Shown one piece after another: positions 1,980 to 53,675 of a DNA stretch of 64,000 bases. The translations under genes were made by a program, and so were the position numbers. The DNA lies in IMG/VR virus record IMGVR_UViG_3300009103_000001, positions 146,158-210,157 of that record; one strand, written 5' to 3'. The notes beneath the pieces were generated by a model. It was not told the DNA's origin and did no database searches. It worked only from the letters and a program-made list of their open reading frames with translations. Positions within the stretch are counted from its first letter, which is position 1, and each line of letters starts with the position of its first letter.

Positions 1980-2455
1980 AATTTTTTATTTTTATTAATT
2001 ATTGTTATAAAGTCTTCCATGACTCTTATATTATAAATACCTTCTTGTCTTAAAATTTTTTTAACATCAGAATCATTATTGTTTATTTTAACATTATCTA
2101 TGTTAATTTCATCTTTTTGATATTGGTTGGGCATCCCAACATTCTTCATGCTACTTTTTTTAGAGTCAATATTATTTCTCATATTACTTAAACTCATATT
2201 TACCCAATCTTTCATTTTTGTTCCACCATTCAAAAGATATGGTGTATCACTTTTTTTACCAGAAAAGTTATCAAAAAAGTTTTTAATTCTTTTTAATTGT
2301 TCATATGATATATTTTTATTATCACACAAATTTTTTAATCTGTTATAACCTTCAACTGTTTTATCACCACAATAAGCATTAAAAATTTTACTTAAATGTT
2401 TATTAACATCCTTATCTATAGTTATTTCTATGCCAACTAATTCACTATTAGCCAT
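1964..2455 (-). CDS. Hypothetical protein
   Basis: 163-aa ORF, start overlaps the stop of the upstream gene. Confidence 0.75.
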   Translation of the reverse strand: MANSELVGIEITIDKDVNKHLSKIFNAYCGDKTVEGYNRLKNLCDNKNISYEQLKRIKNFFDNFSGKKSDTPYLLNGGTKMKDWVNMSLSNMRNNIDSKKSSMKNVGMPNQYQKDEINIDNVKINNNDSDVKKILRQEGIYNIRVMEDFITIINKNKKLCHII

Positions 2456-46467: not shown

Positions 46468-46956
46468 ATGGCAGATTTGCTGATGAGGATGCCCGTACCG
46501 TATGAACCAAAGAAAAAGAATAGGTTTATATTTAGATTTCCTACACCACTTGGTATTCAAGAATGGTTTGTGGCATCAGGTTCAAGACCTAGCGTCACTA
46601 TAGAAGAAACTGAAATACAGTTTTTAAATACCTCAACTTTTGTTGCTGGTAGATTTACATGGGAGACAATTGATGTTACATTCCGTGACCCAATTGGTCC
46701 TTCAGCAGCTCAAGCCCTTATGGAATGGGTTCGTTTACACGCTGAATCTGTTACTGGTAGAATGGGTTACGCAGCTGGTTATAAAAAAGATGTAGAATTA
46801 GAATTACTAGACCCAACAGGTGTTGTAATCGAGAAATGGATTTTACAAGGTACTTTCTTAACTGGTGTTAACTTCAACGATTTAGATTACTCTTCAAGTG
46901 ATATAGCTGATATTAACGCTACACTTAGATTTGATAGAGCAGTACACGTATTCTAG
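46468..46956 (+). CDS. Tail tube protein (T4 gp19-like)
   Basis: EPKKKNRFIF, FVAGRFTWETIDVTFRDPI, WVRLHAES.TGRMGYAAGYKK and EKWILQG.F. Confidence 0.92.
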   Translation: MADLLMRMPVPYEPKKKNRFIFRFPTPLGIQEWFVASGSRPSVTIEETEIQFLNTSTFVAGRFTWETIDVTFRDPIGPSAAQALMEWVRLHAESVTGRMGYAAGYKKDVELELLDPTGVVIEKWILQGTFLTGVNFNDLDYSSSDIADINATLRFDRAVHVF

Positions 46957-46978: not shown

Positions 46979-47006
46979 ATCCTCTTTTTTTAAGAGGATT
47001 TTTTTT
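46979..47006 (+). terminator. Intrinsic terminator after the tube gene
   Basis: ATCCTCTT-TTTTT-AAGAGGAT followed by a T run. Confidence 0.7.
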
Positions 47007-47150: not shown

Positions 47151-48176
47151 TTACCAATCGAATTTTATGTCATTTGGTGAGTCATAGTACCTCACTGAAT
47201 AACCACCATTAAAATCGTCATAATCCCACATGTCATCGAAATCATCATTAGATTCAAACCTAGTGATATCCTCTACAGTTTCATCGTCTTCGTCATCACC
47301 CAACCACTCAAAATCATCAACATAGTGTTGTTCTTCCGAATGATTTTCAGATATAGGAGTACGACCAAACATAGAGGACCATAGGTTTTTCTTTGGTTTA
47401 TCGGACCTAACATATTTAGCTTCACCTAAAACATCAACTATTTTAAGACCCAATTCGAAAGCGTTTTCAACATCCTCAACAAGGACATATTCACTTTTGG
47501 TGTGATACCTATAGTACCCCGCCGCTAAGTTAAGACAAGAGAAATCGAATTTTTCGATTAACTGCCATATGTCAGTGTAAGGATGTTTAGCCCAATCATT
47601 AATACCGTGTTCAAGTATTAAAGGGCTCACTTTCTTACCAAAGTCGGTGTCAACACCAAACAAGTCCTTACTCATTAGAGACATACTCATAGAGTTTCCC
47701 TCTGGGGAGTCGTATTGAATGGCGTAACCGACATCTTTGAAGAATTGTGGGTCCGCGTAACGAGAACCCAAACACCCAATCTCTTCTGATACAAAAAAGG
47801 CAGCTTTAACGTTGTCCAATTTGTCCAACATCTCAAGACAAAGAAAGACACCACACTTATCGTCACCACCGATACCCGATGGCTCCTTAGTTTCACTGTC
47901 AATTCCAGTCAAGGTTAACCTACCTTGTTTGTCACTAGATTCTACAACTTTTAGATTATGGTTGATGTGATGAACGGTATCAGTATGAGAAACAAAACAA
48001 GGATAAAACTCTGCCTCACCTTTTGTAACATACACATTATTGTGTCCATCGATTGTATAATCGAAGCCTTTCTCTTCCAAAACGTCCTTTAGGTATTGAA
48101 CCATAAGGTCTTCTTCCCTTGAATGTGTCGGAACAGAAAGAACCTCTTTTAATCTATTTAATTTACTTTCAGTCAT
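47151..48176 (-). CDS. M20/M28-like zinc peptidase
   Basis: SHTDTVH, GGDDKCGV, VSEEIG and YTD motifs; final YH. Confidence 0.8.
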   Translation of the reverse strand: MTESKLNRLKEVLSVPTHSREEDLMVQYLKDVLEEKGFDYTIDGHNNVYVTKGEAEFYPCFVSHTDTVHHINHNLKVVESSDKQGRLTLTGIDSETKEPSGIGGDDKCGVFLCLEMLDKLDNVKAAFFVSEEIGCLGSRYADPQFFKDVGYAIQYDSPEGNSMSMSLMSKDLFGVDTDFGKKVSPLILEHGINDWAKHPYTDIWQLIEKFDFSCLNLAAGYYRYHTKSEYVLVEDVENAFELGLKIVDVLGEAKYVRSDKPKKNLWSSMFGRTPISENHSEEQHYVDDFEWLGDDEDDETVEDITRFESNDDFDDMWDYDDFNGGYSVRYYDSPNDIKFDW

Positions 48177-48336: not shown

Positions 48337-49092
48337 ATGTCTACAGAAAAAAATGAAATAAGTTTTGAAACGCCCTTTGATGTATTAGAATTACCATCAA
48401 AAGGTCTGTTATATCCAGGTCGACCAGAAACAGTTAAAGTTGAATATCTTACGGCCGCAGATGAAAATATTTTAACATCCCCAAATTTAATTAGAAGTGG
48501 TAAAGTTTTAGATGTTCTTTTAGAAAAAAAGATTAAAAGTACCGAAATACCAATGAAAGATATGTTAGTTGGTGATAGAAATGCTATTATGATTTGGTTA
48601 AGAGCGACAGGATATGGTGAAATGTATCCAGTTAGAATGGCTGACCCTATTACTGGTGAGGAATTTGAAACGGAAATAGATTTATCGAACTTAAAAACTA
48701 AGGAGTTGACAGCTCAACCAGATGAAAATGGTGAATTTAGTTTTGATTTACCAAGAAGTAAAAAGAAAGTTAAATTTAAACTTTTGACCGTTGGTGATGA
48801 AACTAGTATTGCTAAAAAATCGGAAATTAGAGGTAAAAACACACAAATTAGTAACGCTTTAACATATAGACTACAAGCACAAATTAAGGAAATTGATGGG
48901 AATAGAGACCCTAATGTGATATCAAGATTTGTAAATGTAATGCCAGCCTACGATTCACTTAAATTTAGAGAATATTCGGATGATATTGAACCAGGAATAG
49001 ATTTAGAGGTGGACGTGGAGGGTCCATCTGGCCCCTTTCGTAGTCCCTTTACAATTGGACTCAACTTTTTTTGGCCTAACGCCAGAGTATAG
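48337..49092 (+). CDS. Tail assembly chaperone / baseplate hub assembly protein (T4 gp26-like)
   Basis: LELPSKG..Y, LTAADENIL, GDRNAIMIWLRATGYG; located between tube and tape measure. Confidence 0.75.
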   Translation: MSTEKNEISFETPFDVLELPSKGLLYPGRPETVKVEYLTAADENILTSPNLIRSGKVLDVLLEKKIKSTEIPMKDMLVGDRNAIMIWLRATGYGEMYPVRMADPITGEEFETEIDLSNLKTKELTAQPDENGEFSFDLPRSKKKVKFKLLTVGDETSIAKKSEIRGKNTQISNALTYRLQAQIKEIDGNRDPNVISRFVNVMPAYDSLKFREYSDDIEPGIDLEVDVEGPSGPFRSPFTIGLNFFWPNARV

Positions 49093-49270
49093 AAAAAATT
49101 TAATAGAACAAATTTATTATATGGTTAAACATATGAACTTCGGTTATATCGAAGTTCAATACATGCCTGTATATGAAAGACGTGTTTATTTAGATATGTG
49201 GCAAAAAGAGATGGAAGAACAACATAAACAACATAAACAAGCCCAAGCTAAAAGTAGGCGTAAAAGGTAA
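49055..49270 (+). CDS. Short chaperone partner (gp51/gpT-like), probably a frameshift extension of the upstream gene
   Basis: Only a TTG start, inside the upstream gene; YMVKHMNF...MPVYERRVYL..W..E pattern; T7 run at the overlap. Confidence 0.6.
   Translation: MDSTFFGLTPEYRKNLIEQIYYMVKHMNFGYIEVQYMPVYERRVYLDMWQKEMEEQHKQHKQAQAKSRRKR
49066..49072 (+). other. Candidate programmed frameshift slippery site (T7)
   Basis: AAC TTT TTT TGG in frame 0 versus ACT TTT TTT GGC in the +1 frame. Confidence 0.55.
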
Positions 49271-49300: not shown

Positions 49301-51073
49301 ATGACCAAAAAATTAATGGATATTATAAAAGAAGATGTTCCTTCAGAACTTCAACAATATAAGAAACCATATGATAAAATGATGAAATCTGCGTCAGATG
49401 ACACAGAAATGGTTCAGGCAAAACTAAGAGGTAGTGATGATGATTTGGACTCCGCCGCATCTAAATTTGGCATGGGGTCTGGTTTAGATTTTTATCCATT
49501 AGTTTCCATGGAAAAACCCTTCAATACAGCATTTGAGGTTAAATTTGTTGGTGCTAAAATACCTGTTCATTGGAAGGGTGAAAAATCAGAAATAGAAGGT
49601 GATTCAGAGGTAGATTCGTTTAATGCGGTAATTTGGTTAGACCCAGAGTCTTTTAAAAAAGTTAAAGGTGGTTCTACAGATGATGAATACAAATTCAAAA
49701 TTGTTAAAATTGATAACAAAGAGTTAAATGATAATTATTTAATTTTTAGAGGTAATGAAATAAACATTACAGATAAAAGAGTAGGTAAGGTTACACCACA
49801 ATTAAGTACTAGTAAAAAATATAATATAAATATATCTATCGGTGATGATGAGGTTACTGGTGGAGATGGTGGTGATACTGAAGGTGGTGACGTTGATGTA
49901 CCAGAAGAAATAGCTAACGGTAGGAATAGAAATGAGATATTTAGATTGTTATTAAATAGGTTTGGTGGTTTTAATGGTTATGTTGTTCATGGTGATGGAT
50001 TTAAAAATATTGAGGACGCTAGAGCCTATGGTAGGTTATTAAAAGCTATAAAAGCCGGAAAAGAAGATGAGTCAAAGGCAAAAGAATTTAGAGATAAAGT
50101 TAATAGAGATTCATATGCTATGATGATTTCTAATCTTAGAAAATCATTTCCTAGTAATTTTTTATCAAAACTATCAAAAGCTTTTCCAGAGTTTAACATA
50201 ACTTTCAATAAAGAAAGTATTGGAGAAAATATTGTTAAACAAAATTTATTAGAAGAAGAAAATTCAGACAAATATAAAAGGTGGAATATTGTATTTCCTG
50301 GTAAGGTTGTTGGTGGTAAGTCTATAGATGCTTTGGATAAAAATATTATTAATTTTATGAAAGCCGTTAAAAAATGGTTTGCTGTGCCAATAGATTATAG
50401 AGGAAAAAAACAATCATATACAATAAATTATGATGAAGATAAGGTTAATAAATATTTTTCAACTTTTTATAGTAAAAAGGAGAGTATGCTATCTATTGGT
50501 AATATCTTGAATGAAATAGTTAAAGATAGATTACATGAAGATGATGAAAATATTGGAACTGATACAGAAAAAAAACAGAAAATAGAACCAAAAATACAAT
50601 TAATTTTTAATAAAATAGAAGTTAAAGGTATGAAACGTGGTGAACAAAATTATAGTGATGATGATTTTGATAGAACAGCAAAATCTTTATCAGGTGGTGG
50701 TAAAGTAGAATTAAAGATTTCAAATTTTGAATTTAAAGATTCTTTAGATAAGATTAAGGAAAAAGCTGAAAAATCTAGTAAAAATTTCAGTTCAGGAGAG
50801 GTAGAATCTTTTATAGATGTATTAAAAAACATGAATAATAATACTGTTGGTTTAAAATCCGATAGAGAAAATTTAATGTTAAATATTGGTAAAACTAAAC
50901 TAAATAAAAATATATGGTTAAACATACCTATTAAAGATAATGGGGGTGATTTAAATGTTTTACTTAAAAAATTAGGTAATGGTGATACCTTTATTAAATG
51001 TAGTATAGCTTATGCTGACCCATACGACCCATTCATTAAGGATGATATTGTTATTAAATTAAAGTTAAAATAA
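49301..51073 (+). CDS. Hypothetical protein with DIIKE leader, candidate internal head protein
   Basis: 590 aa; internal LLEEE, ILNE and LHE sites; shares a domain with the 44171-46411 protein. Confidence 0.7.
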   Translation: MTKKLMDIIKEDVPSELQQYKKPYDKMMKSASDDTEMVQAKLRGSDDDLDSAASKFGMGSGLDFYPLVSMEKPFNTAFEVKFVGAKIPVHWKGEKSEIEGDSEVDSFNAVIWLDPESFKKVKGGSTDDEYKFKIVKIDNKELNDNYLIFRGNEINITDKRVGKVTPQLSTSKKYNINISIGDDEVTGGDGGDTEGGDVDVPEEIANGRNRNEIFRLLLNRFGGFNGYVVHGDGFKNIEDARAYGRLLKAIKAGKEDESKAKEFRDKVNRDSYAMMISNLRKSFPSNFLSKLSKAFPEFNITFNKESIGENIVKQNLLEEENSDKYKRWNIVFPGKVVGGKSIDALDKNIINFMKAVKKWFAVPIDYRGKKQSYTINYDEDKVNKYFSTFYSKKESMLSIGNILNEIVKDRLHEDDENIGTDTEKKQKIEPKIQLIFNKIEVKGMKRGEQNYSDDDFDRTAKSLSGGGKVELKISNFEFKDSLDKIKEKAEKSSKNFSSGEVESFIDVLKNMNNNTVGLKSDRENLMLNIGKTKLNKNIWLNIPIKDNGGDLNVLLKKLGNGDTFIKCSIAYADPYDPFIKDDIVIKLKLK

Positions 51074-51080
51074 TTAACTT

Positions 51081-53675
51081 ATGGCAGAAAATTTAGACCC
51101 AAAAAACTTAGATAAGTTTGTTAAAAATATGAAAGCCGCTCAAGAATACTCTAAGGAGGTTAATGAGAGTTTTGCGGCGTGGGGTAGGTCTGCAGCTAAA
51201 ATAAAAGAATATAGTGACGCGATAAAAAATAGACAAAAAATTATTGCTGAACTACAAAATCAGATTGCTGACGCTACTGAGGAAGAAAAAGAACAGTTAG
51301 AAGCTCAGATAGCCTATGAACAAGAGAAGATAAAACTTAATCAAGAACAATTAAAATTATTAAAAAAACAACGTAGTACTTTAAAAACTTTAGCCAATGA
51401 AACAATAAGTTTCTTAGGTAAACAAGGTGGTTTAGTTAATAAAGTTGTCGATGGTTTTACTAAGATGGATGGTTCTGCTAGAAGAATTTCAGTAGAAATG
51501 GGTATGGGTACCCTTAGAATGAGCCAATTTCAAATGGCTTCAGCTCAAGCAGCACAACAATTAGAGTTAATTGGTATTGAAGCGGCTGGAGCGGCTGAAA
51601 TGATGAGTTCATATGCTGACGAGACTGGTAGACAAGTTATACTTGGTAAAACACAGTTGGTACAAATGGGGGCTTTATCAAAAAGAACTGGTATGGCTCA
51701 CACAGAAATGGCTGGGTTAGCTGGTCAAATGGAAAGTTTTGGTATTGGTGCTGATGATTCTGTTGAACTGATTAGTGAAATAGCTGATATGTCTGACAAA
51801 ATGGGTGTGAATACTGCTAAAGTAATTAAGAAAGTACAAGGTAACTTAAAATTAGTAAATAAACTTAGTTTTAAGGGTGGTATTAGAGGTATGGCCCAAA
51901 TGGCAGCTCATGCTGAAAAATATAAGATAAACATGGAAGAGGTGGCTGGTTTCGCTGAAAAAGTATTTAGACCTGAAGGTGCTATTGATGCAGCAGCTAA
52001 TCTACAAGTGTTAGGTGGTAGTTTAGCTAATATGGGTGACCCTTTTCAATTAATGTATCAGGCTAGGCATGCTCCTGAAGAATTGGCCAAGTCATTAACC
52101 AAAGCGGCTGCTCAATCCGCGGTATTTAATAAAACTACTGGTGAGTTTGAAGTTAATGCTTTAGAATTAGACAGGTTGAGGGAGGCTTCTGAAGCTACAG
52201 GTATGAGTATGGAAATGCTTGTTGGTGTGGCTAAACAGAGTGCTAAAATGAATATGTTTGAAGATGTTTTAAAGGTTGGTGGTGAAGATAAGGAGTTTCT
52301 ATCTTCAATTGCTGAAATGAAAGATGGTAAAGCCCAAATAGCTATTGATGTAGACCCTAAGACTGGTGAAAAACAATATGCAAAACTATCAGAACTTTCT
52401 GCTAGTGAACAAATGGCTGCGGCCAAAAGACTAAAAAAGGAAAAAGAGTCAAATGAAGAGGCGGCTAGAAGAGCACAAGCTTCAATGGAGTTAATGAGAA
52501 ATAGTATGAACGCTTTATTAGCCTCATTTTATCCAGTATTAGTACGATTAGATAAAACACTTAGACCATGGATTGAATGGTTTGTCGACCAAACATTATG
52601 GTTAGGTAGTATGATTAAAAAATATTTTTCACCTTTGGGTGCAGTATTAACCGCTTTCGCACTTAAGTTTGGTATTAAGATGGCCACATGGATTATGCGT
52701 GGTAGGTGGTTAGGTATGGGGTTCAATATGACAGCCGGTAAGGGTGGTATGTTAAGTAGGATGTTTGGTGGTAAAGGTGGTGGTGGACCAGTAACAAAAT
52801 CTGGTAAACCCGATATGAGGTTTAAAGCTAATAAAACAGCGATGGGCGGTCAATCAGCGAAAGGTTTAGGTGCGACAGGTAAAGCCGTAGGTGGTTTTTC
52901 AAGTGCTGTTGGTAGTGCTGCACAAATTATCGCAATAGCCGGAGCTTTGTGGATTTTATCAGACGCGATAGTTAAATTAGCCGAAATACCTTGGCCAAAC
53001 TTATTAATGGCAACAGGTGTTCTTCTTGCTTTGGGCGTTGGTTTAGCTATTTTTATGAATTTTATGGCTGGTTTAGGACTTAATCCAGCTGTGTGGTTAG
53101 GTGTCGCTTTATTATTAGCGGTTGGTGCGGCATTTATGATGTTAGGTGCAGCAATTTACTTCATATCGGCGGGTGTTGCTTTAATTGTAGAATCCTTTAC
53201 TGGTTTATTCAGTGTTATAAATGCTGATAATATTGGTGCTTTATTATTACTAGGTCCAGCTTTAGCTGGTATTGGTTTAGGTATGATGGTTTTAACCGCT
53301 TCATTGATTGGTTTTGGTTTAGCGTGGCTCATTGGTGGTTGGGCTTTTGAAGACATGGCAGAGTCTATTGGGGCTTTAGGTAATACAGATTTATCTGGTT
53401 TAGGTACTGCTGTCCAAGCGATAAATAATGTTGACATGAATAAAATCGAGGCTCTTAGAGATTTAGCTAGTGCATTATCACTATTTAGTTTATTTAGTGG
53501 TGGAGGTATTAAAATTGATTTCGGTGATTTAGATGTTAAAGGTAAGATTGATTTAGAAGGAGAAGGTGGCGGAAGAACTTCAACTGATTGGGTAGAAGAC
53601 CCAATATTTGTATCTAAATTAAAAGATTTAATTTGGGAAACAATGGAAGCTGATAAAACTGGCGGCAAGCCTTAA
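51081..53675 (+). CDS. Tape measure protein
   Basis: Ala/Gly-rich helical protein with coiled-coil N-terminus and hydrophobic C-terminal half; canonical position after the chaperones. Confidence 0.85.
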   Translation: MAENLDPKNLDKFVKNMKAAQEYSKEVNESFAAWGRSAAKIKEYSDAIKNRQKIIAELQNQIADATEEEKEQLEAQIAYEQEKIKLNQEQLKLLKKQRSTLKTLANETISFLGKQGGLVNKVVDGFTKMDGSARRISVEMGMGTLRMSQFQMASAQAAQQLELIGIEAAGAAEMMSSYADETGRQVILGKTQLVQMGALSKRTGMAHTEMAGLAGQMESFGIGADDSVELISEIADMSDKMGVNTAKVIKKVQGNLKLVNKLSFKGGIRGMAQMAAHAEKYKINMEEVAGFAEKVFRPEGAIDAAANLQVLGGSLANMGDPFQLMYQARHAPEELAKSLTKAAAQSAVFNKTTGEFEVNALELDRLREASEATGMSMEMLVGVAKQSAKMNMFEDVLKVGGEDKEFLSSIAEMKDGKAQIAIDVDPKTGEKQYAKLSELSASEQMAAAKRLKKEKESNEEAARRAQASMELMRNSMNALLASFYPVLVRLDKTLRPWIEWFVDQTLWLGSMIKKYFSPLGAVLTAFALKFGIKMATWIMRGRWLGMGFNMTAGKGGMLSRMFGGKGGGGPVTKSGKPDMRFKANKTAMGGQSAKGLGATGKAVGGFSSAVGSAAQIIAIAGALWILSDAIVKLAEIPWPNLLMATGVLLALGVGLAIFMNFMAGLGLNPAVWLGVALLLAVGAAFMMLGAAIYFISAGVALIVESFTGLFSVINADNIGALLLLGPALAGIGLGMMVLTASLIGFGLAWLIGGWAFEDMAESIGALGNTDLSGLGTAVQAINNVDMNKIEALRDLASALSLFSLFSGGGIKIDFGDLDVKGKIDLEGEGGGRTSTDWVEDPIFVSKLKDLIWETMEADKTGGKP

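Follow-up and report, generated by a model that had tools for sequence, protein, structure and literature searches.

The window analysed here is a stretch of 64,000 nucleotides (nt) that forms the last 64 kb of the 210,157-bp marine virus record IMGVR_UViG_3300009103_000001, with a guanine plus cytosine (GC) content of 31.7%. Its plus strand contains two overlapping open reading frames (ORFs) related to the hub assembly chaperones gp26 and gp51 of phage T4, which are probably joined by programmed +1 ribosomal frameshifting. ORF1 (48337..49092, +) starts with ATG, encodes 251 residues including a T4_baseplate domain, and ends with ...IGLNFFWPNARV at the stop codon TAG (49090-92). The downstream frame, ORF2, lies at +1 with respect to ORF1 and extends as an open frame over 49007..49270. 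The first codon in it that could serve as a start is a TTG at 49055, from which 71 residues would be encoded. Counted from this TTG, ORF1 and ORF2 overlap by 38 nt (49055..49092), with AAC TTT TTT TGG CCT AAC GCC AGA GTA TAG as the reading in frame 0.

The overlap harbors a run of seven T (T7; 49066..49072, +), which is composed of the codons of Phe244 (49066-68) and Phe245 (49069-71) and the first base of the Trp246 codon (49072-74). We propose this run as the +1 slip site (UUU_U). A forward move of one base at the first or the second Phe codon would produce ...GLNFF-GLTPEYRK..., giving a conceptual protein of 245 + 65 = 310 residues. The post-shift region (49073..49270, +) consists of 65 codons and a stop codon and reads GLTPEYRK...MPVYERRVY...KR; its homologues are the T4 gp51 C-terminal tail and the short cyanophage protein annotated as 'gp51'. 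The +1 frame is also open upstream of the slip site (49007..49072, +), where the TTG at 49055 is the sole start-type codon; judging from its sequence, this stretch is probably not translated. An earlier note on this DNA had described a 38-nt overlap across AAC TTT TTT TGG and alternative products of about 310 and 251 residues, and the coordinates confirm this anatomy.

ORF1 matches the Pfam family T4_baseplate (PF12322) with 36.4 bits (cut-off 24.5; E 5.8e-9), with only residues 32-133 aligned, and the PHROG family phrog_150, 'baseplate hub' (E 4e-9). ORF2 matches phrog_634, 'baseplate hub assembly catalyst' (E 2e-5, profile positions 68-120), which is matched by 9 of 21 family members. In addition, ORF2 aligns with gp51 of cyanophage P-SSM2 in pairwise BLASTP (E 1e-5). 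The earlier note had named the two frames gp26-like and gp51-like. These profile matches place ORF1 in the gp26 family and relate ORF2 to gp51, but ORF2 corresponds only to the C-terminal tail and not to the whole of gp51.

In T4, genes 26 (208 residues) and 51 (249 residues) are divergently transcribed. Their products are detectably similar (E 2e-6, 20% identity), and the whole PF12322 profile is covered by residues 1-206 of gp26 and by residues 1-201 of gp51. Residues 147-246 of gp51 match phrog_634 (E 1e-23), a segment that gp26 lacks. When the alignment of the tail was compared by hhalign with single T4 sequences, gp51 gave a weak match at residues 222-248 (E 0.0096) and gp26 gave no match. 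The end of gp26 (...GLKEFFELL) resembles the end of ORF1 (...GLNFFWPNARV) and terminates at the same point, and gp51 runs on into ...SKMIPAERGFVLKLIEK, which aligns with ...YMPVYERRVYLDMWQKE of ORF2. On these alignments, ORF2 is the segment that sets gp51 apart from gp26 and not an entire gp51, and ORF1 is the zero-frame product, a predicted short form analogous to gp26. Because gp26 and gp51 share the full T4_baseplate domain and the tail is specific to gp51, the short product would be equivalent to gp26 and the long product to gp51. The same comparison suggests that in T4 duplicate genes supply a short/long chaperone pair, gp26 and gp51. In a comparison with L045, L003 and L046-L049, cysteines are absent from ORF1 and its marine relatives at the positions where T4 gp26/gp51 and the homologues from Firmicute phages and megaphages carry a zinc-ribbon-like CxxC...C motif, and this metal site seems to have been lost in the clade of the window.

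The junction was compared among 132 homologous loci from GenBank phages, IMG/VR and three distant cluster representatives, which yielded 99 distinct junctions with 27-100% identity to ORF1. A gp51-like ORF of 53-122 codons spans the ORF1 stop in the +1 frame in all 99 junctions (one of these ORFs ends at a contig edge). Moreover, 98 of the 99 contain a zero-frame UUU followed by U or C (UUU_Y) within the short segment that is open in both frames. The most common form is TTT TTT TGG CCT (67 junctions), and TTT CTT followed by TGG, TAC or GGA is found in 16. Four junctions read CTT TTT TGG TTT TAA, and the remaining ones read TTT CTA TGG, TTT TTA TGG, TTC TTT CGT, or TTT TTT followed by CGT, CAC, AGT, TAT or TAC. 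The T run is interrupted in about one fifth of the 99 junctions, and the +1 arrangement is still kept. Conservation of the frame offset and of the T run had been proposed as checks; the offset is invariant and UUU_Y is nearly so, but the uninterrupted T run is not kept in all junctions. The single junction lacking UUU_Y is L058 (logan SRR33225610 contig, 2005..2051), which reads ATT TTC ATT; here either tRNA-Phe would have to slip by -2 (UUC to UUU) or tRNA-Ile by +1.

Conservation passes from frame 0 to frame +1 at the Phe-Phe codons. Downstream of them, the most variable codon position is the wobble position of the +1 phase, as seen in 19 distinct sequences of the closest clades. The +1-frame peptide is kept between clades as (F/Y)-G-L-(T/S/N)-x-(E/S/D)-Y after Phe-Phe and as M-P-x-x-E-R-R-x-Y further on, and the zero-frame tail at the same place is variable in sequence and 2 to 11 codons long. 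In Bacillus phage HSE3 no more than 12 nt of the +1 frame are open ahead of the site, which confines the homologous shifting to about 20 nt around the Phe-Phe codons. The 15-nt core TTTTTTTGGCCTAAC (49066..49080, +) is invariant at 14 of its 15 positions in the 19 sequences, including the wobble positions of both frames, and contains the rare codons GGC and CTA. The near-invariant TGGCCT encodes Trp-Pro in frame 0 and Gly-Leu, with rare codons, in frame +1, which suggests either that the nucleotides themselves contribute to shifting or that both C-termini are under selection. In run X1, a contig of 169 nt that comes from another organism matches the window only at 49065..49096 (32 nt), with two differences and unrelated flanks. 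This match extends only from the slip-site core to the ORF1 stop, indicating that the core is highly conserved at the DNA level.

Contigs from cold-seep and brine metagenomes of two other studies span the junction with single-nucleotide polymorphisms, zero insertions or deletions, and the T7 run kept. Both ORF1 and ORF2 are under purifying selection. Among the sequencing runs listed with this locus, none is an RNA run. A database search gave 1405 homologues of ORF1, of which the best 120 (66-100% identity) have lengths of 204-264 residues, and 2490 matches were found among 1.8 billion cluster representatives. Among the best 150 of these 2490, matches that reach the C-terminal end of the query nearly always stop close to the C-terminus of the protein, usually 0-3 residues from it, whatever the length of the N-terminus, and no fused ORF1-ORF2 form is present. 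The stop after ...FFWP.. is thus a stable feature of the family. Many homologues carry extensions of 100-250 residues before the T4_baseplate domain (proteins of 300-544 residues), and ORF1 has no such extension. A nucleotide search of the phage collection gave no match to the locus, and tblastn with ORF2 alone retrieved only immuto phages (E 0.1). The combination of overlap, frame offset and slip site is more than a chance arrangement.

The start codons of ORF2 are far less regular than its frame. No ATG, GTG or TTG is present in the +1 frame between the upstream stop and the site in 22 of the 99 junctions, an ATG upstream of the site is found in only 17, and no start codon is conserved in position. 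This agrees with the earlier description of ORF2 as having only an internal TTG. The P-SSM2-like cyanophages served as a control. In 68 of 68 distinct junctions of this group, the tail ORF is in the -1 frame and has an ATG 2 nt past the gp26 stop. Since a conserved ATG is visible in that clade, the lack of a conserved start in the clade of the window is informative.

More generally, T4-like cyanophages and pelagiphages contain one T4_baseplate gene ending in ...GLQSFF, followed by a short ORF annotated as gp51. All 68 junctions of the P-SSM2-like cyanophages (L054, L139-L218) also keep the -1 heptamer T TTT TTC just before the gp26 stop, and these phages may make a fusion product beside the free peptide. 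In Pelagibacter phage HTVC008M (L055; NC_020484 16366..17255, -), gp26 ends with AGT TTT TTT TAA, and the gp51-like ORF, which has no nearby start, extends in the -1 frame over the run of eight T (T8). The annotated ATG start of HTVC008M gp51 excludes the conserved HIDLETYY segment. Judged from this arrangement, HTVC008M may use a -1 frameshift or slippage.

The genomic position of the pair agrees with that of known tail chaperones. Six cultured relatives have the order sheath, tube, T4_baseplate ORF, small +1 ORF and tape measure. In the phages immuto, HSE3, LIS04 and SP-15, the pair is located directly between the tube and tape measure genes, which is the canonical position of the G and T genes. 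In Mel-JY01, one small extra ORF precedes the large downstream gene, which is annotated as hypothetical only. The window contains a gp19-like tail tube protein gene (46468..46956, +; phrog_4542, E 2.5e-29) upstream of ORF1 and a putative tape measure gene of 864 residues (51081..53675, +) downstream of ORF2. The latter has a coiled N-terminal part and a hydrophobic C-terminal part rich in Gly and Ala, and is weakly similar to the annotated tape measure protein of Flavobacterium phage immuto (E 2e-6). It matches no Pfam or PHROG family.

The order of tube, chaperone and tape measure genes is interrupted in the window by two inserted genes. A peptidase-like gene (47151..48176, -; phrog_4191, E 8e-43, with weak matches to M42, M28 and M20) is located between the tube gene and ORF1, and an ORF of 590 residues with no Pfam or PHROG match (49301..51073) separates the chaperone pair from the putative tape measure gene. 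An ORF of 324 residues occupies the position of the 590-residue ORF in the locus L056, while in the cultured relatives the tape measure gene directly follows the small ORF. Directly after the tube gene there is a terminator-like hairpin followed by a T run (46979..46999), which may set the ratio of tube to downstream transcripts. In Bacillus phage SP-15, a terminator is annotated at the same place. An ORF of 746 residues upstream of the tube gene was considered as an immuto-type sheath and rejected.

An AlphaFold (AF2) model of ORF1, built with alignment rows from IMG/VR and databases only, has a mean predicted local distance difference test score (pLDDT) of 87 and a predicted template modelling score (pTM) of 0.80. 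A fold search of BFVD with this model gave 63 matches with E<=1e-3, including the baseplate hub subunit of SP-15 (template modelling score, TM, 0.84) and entries named 'baseplate hub assembly protein, T4-like'. Foldseek against the PDB found no significant match for the model. In an exhaustive comparison with 48,161 PDB chains, the best three were 3FGX (Z 5.9), 3KLU/YqbN (Z 5.6) and 2OB9/HK97 (Z 5.0), all aligned with residues 1-102 of ORF1. These three are the solved phage tail assembly chaperones, and in the study that compared them with its own chaperone-like query protein the Z scores were about 4.5 (PMC9603447). The occurrence of the three solved chaperones at the three top ranks is unlikely to be chance and is suggestive of a chaperone fold in the modelled ORF1. 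In addition, 2OB9 matches residues 131-220 (Z 4.9), and this result suggests that two chaperone-like domains in tandem make up the T4_baseplate body.

Taken together, the locus is best read as a chaperone pair of the G/GT type produced by programmed +1 ribosomal frameshifting on UUU_U, an interpretation we hold with good though not complete confidence. The strictly conserved frame offset, the start-less ORF2, and the position between the tube and tape measure genes all support such a pair at the level of sequence. ORF1 and ORF2 would constitute one tail or hub assembly chaperone gene that is decoded in two ways. Most ribosomes would read ORF1 to the TAG codon, making the protein of 251 residues equivalent to T4 gp26 and lambda gpG. 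In a fraction of ribosomes, the P-site tRNA-Phe on UUU (49066-68 or 49069-71) would move by +1 onto the overlapping UUU, and decoding would resume with GGC at 49073. The resulting product of 310 residues would carry a basic tail of 65 residues with the M-P-x-x-E-R-R-x-Y motif, equivalent to T4 gp51 and lambda gpGT. We infer that the shift is ribosomal, that the short and the long product are both made, and that a set ratio of the two is needed, the shared domain coating the tape measure and the tail recruiting another tail component. The earlier note had linked the T4 hub-chaperone pair with the G/GT mechanism, and the conserved offset and site, the position between tube and tape measure genes, and the chaperones among the top fold matches all strengthen this link.

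Several observations weigh against this frameshift. RNAalifold predicts no conserved RNA structure around the site (0 pairs); a small hairpin (z -1.65) seen in the window lacks conservation. Neither a conserved Shine-Dalgarno-like sequence nor a conserved purine tract is found upstream of the site. In the codon usage of the phage, UGG, which occupies the A site in frame 0, is used more often than GGC, the incoming codon in frame +1 (15 versus 3.7 per 1000), which is the opposite of a simple hungry-codon model. The structural Z scores of ORF1 are low (5-6). Finally, a group of observations bears on translation of ORF2 from a start of its own: the window has the TTG at 49055, a GTG is located 42 nt upstream of the site in 41 of the 99 relatives, some of them with GGAG before it, and in the Kyanoviridae an ATG of its own apparently directs synthesis of the tail as a small free-standing protein, so that a free tail can function. 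Flavobacterial and cyanobacterial hosts often initiate translation without a Shine-Dalgarno sequence, and such hosts could start ORF2 at the TTG or at the GTG.

These observations on starts are the basis of the view that ORF2 is a separate small gene, which would be expressed from the TTG at 49055, from a non-canonical start or by re-initiation, to give a free gp51-like peptide of about 8 kDa. A TTG is present 15-18 nt before the site in the window and in L001, L002 and L004-L008, and the ATG of the P-SSM2-like phages, kept in every junction of that group, sets a precedent. We consider a separate gene unlikely, since start-type codons are missing altogether from 22 of the 99 junctions and no position of such a codon is conserved, nothing purine-rich precedes the TTG at 49055, and the +1 frame is conserved from the T run onward and not upstream of it. 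Moreover, a separate gene leaves unexplained the strict +1 offset and the overlap across UUU_Y. The long form could alternatively arise by slippage of RNA polymerase on T7, with one U fewer in some transcripts. Its product would be identical to that of the ribosomal shift, the 7-T run is invariant in 67 of the 99 junctions, and slippage is known at homopolymers this long (PMC5009743). However, in about one fifth of the relatives the run is no longer than 3-4 T (TTT CTT TGG, TTT CTA TGG, TTC TTT CGT) and the +1 arrangement is the same. Seven bases are at the low end for slippage of bacterial polymerase, and TTT is in any case the preferred Phe codon in a genome of 32% GC. Polymerase slippage is therefore improbable, and as a common mechanism of the family it is ruled out by the interrupted runs.

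Those interrupted runs also bear on the direction of the shift, for which the earlier note had considered both +1 and -2. A -2 shift would give NFFFGLTPEYR, the T7 run allows perfect re-pairing for it, and the distant L058, lacking UUU_Y, fits it better. In contrast, TTT CTA TGG, TTT CTT TGG and TTC TTT CGT bar -2 re-pairing and all allow +1, so that the +1 direction is favored and a -2 shift is very improbable. Homopolymer runs are prone to sequencing errors, and the arrangement might accordingly reflect a sequencing or assembly error or a decaying gene. This explanation has a negligible chance of being correct and is refuted, since contigs from three studies agree, all 99 relatives share the arrangement including those with interrupted runs, which rule out a homopolymer error, and both frames are under purifying selection.

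The proposed +1 frameshift has implications beyond the window. The G-T frameshift has been described as conserved among long-tailed phages 'except T4' (PMC5009743). The G/GT principle may instead be universal in long-tailed phages, including the T4 lineage, with gp26/gp51 as a divergent duplicated-domain chaperone and with the short/long pair realised in at least three ways; we regard the chances of this broader proposal as even. If it is true, the three ways are a +1 frameshift on UUU_UGG, a separately initiated tail or -1 shift in Kyanoviridae, and two paralogues in T4. It would then provide a testable explanation of the T4 exception (PMC5009743), in which T4 makes the same short and long forms from duplicate genes and the phages studied here make them by recoding. 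The +1 clade would also be very large, comprising hundreds of IMG/VR loci and the 2490 cluster representatives, and few natural +1 frameshift sites of the stop-independent kind would be more widespread in bacteria. Forward shifts in other chaperone families are already known; what is new is how widely the arrangement occurs, the range of naturally occurring site variants, and the changed reading of gp26/gp51. The many natural variants (UUU_UGG, UUU_CUU, UUU_CGU) would be useful for studying the efficiency of +1 shifting. In the inspected GenBank relatives the long form is annotated in none, the tail ORF being unannotated, truncated or named 'hypothetical protein', and adding the long form would correct these annotations. 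Cultured systems are available in Flavobacterium phage immuto, Bacillus phages SP-15 and HSE3, and Microcystis phage Mel-JY01.

Among known systems, lambda gpG/gpGT, with the conserved tail assembly chaperone frameshift of long-tailed phages (Xu, Hendrix and Duda 2004; review in PMC5009743), is similar to the window in that two ORFs overlap between the tube and tape measure genes, the downstream one is start-less, and an N-terminal body is common to the short and long products; the predicted fold may be similar as well. The two differ in the shift, which is -1 on a heptamer in lambda and would be +1 on UUU_U in the window, and in the body, which is about 130 residues in lambda gpG and a two-domain T4_baseplate protein of 245 residues in the window. 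The lambda-type gene order also lacks the peptidase gene and the 590-residue ORF inserted in the window. T4 gp26 and gp51 are hub assembly chaperones (PMC3004832) and belong to the same Pfam family as ORF1, with gp26 resembling the short form in its ...GL-x-x-FF end and gp51 resembling the long form in its M-P-x-x-E-R tail. Unlike the window, T4 has two divergently transcribed paralogues with 20% identity and no frameshift, and both contain Cys-rich zinc-ribbon motifs that are absent from ORF1. The Kyanoviridae phages P-SSM2 and HTVC008M share with the window a single T4_baseplate gene (...GLQSFF), a short homologous tail ORF and the tape measure gene. They differ in the -1 frame of the tail ORF, together with a conserved ATG in P-SSM2-like phages and a T8 run suggesting a -1 shift in HTVC008M.

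Forward shifts in tail chaperones have precedents. The haloarchaeal myovirus HSTV-2 has a +1 tail chaperone frameshift, and SEA-PHAGES annotations of actinophages contain 350 'forward' tail chaperone shifts (PMC10274946). These cases are similar to the window in direction but concern unrelated chaperone families, and none was found in the T4_baseplate family. A preprint on phage G mentions a frameshifted chaperone but does not name the T4_baseplate family. Our literature searches found no paper describing a frameshift in the gp26/gp51 family or linking the T4 exception to gp26/gp51.

At the level of the site, the UUU UGG of the window is the same hexamer as the site proposed for Yersinia yopN-tyeA (UUU-UGG; PMC5009743, PMC3789692), although mutating the yopN site did not abolish the hybrid protein and the site is unconfirmed by mutagenesis (PMC3789692). 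The Firmicute phage relatives have UUU CGU C, like the UCC_UUU_CGU of influenza PA-X, and the CUU UGG C of phage immuto is one base away from the prfB site CUU_UGA_C. The window differs from prfB in having no stop codon in the A site, which is UGG here and UUU, CUA or CGU in relatives, and no Shine-Dalgarno stimulator. In yopN, PA-X and prfB alike, the P-site tRNA slips by +1 onto an overlapping, near-identical codon, and this is the movement proposed for tRNA-Phe at the junction of ORF1 and ORF2.

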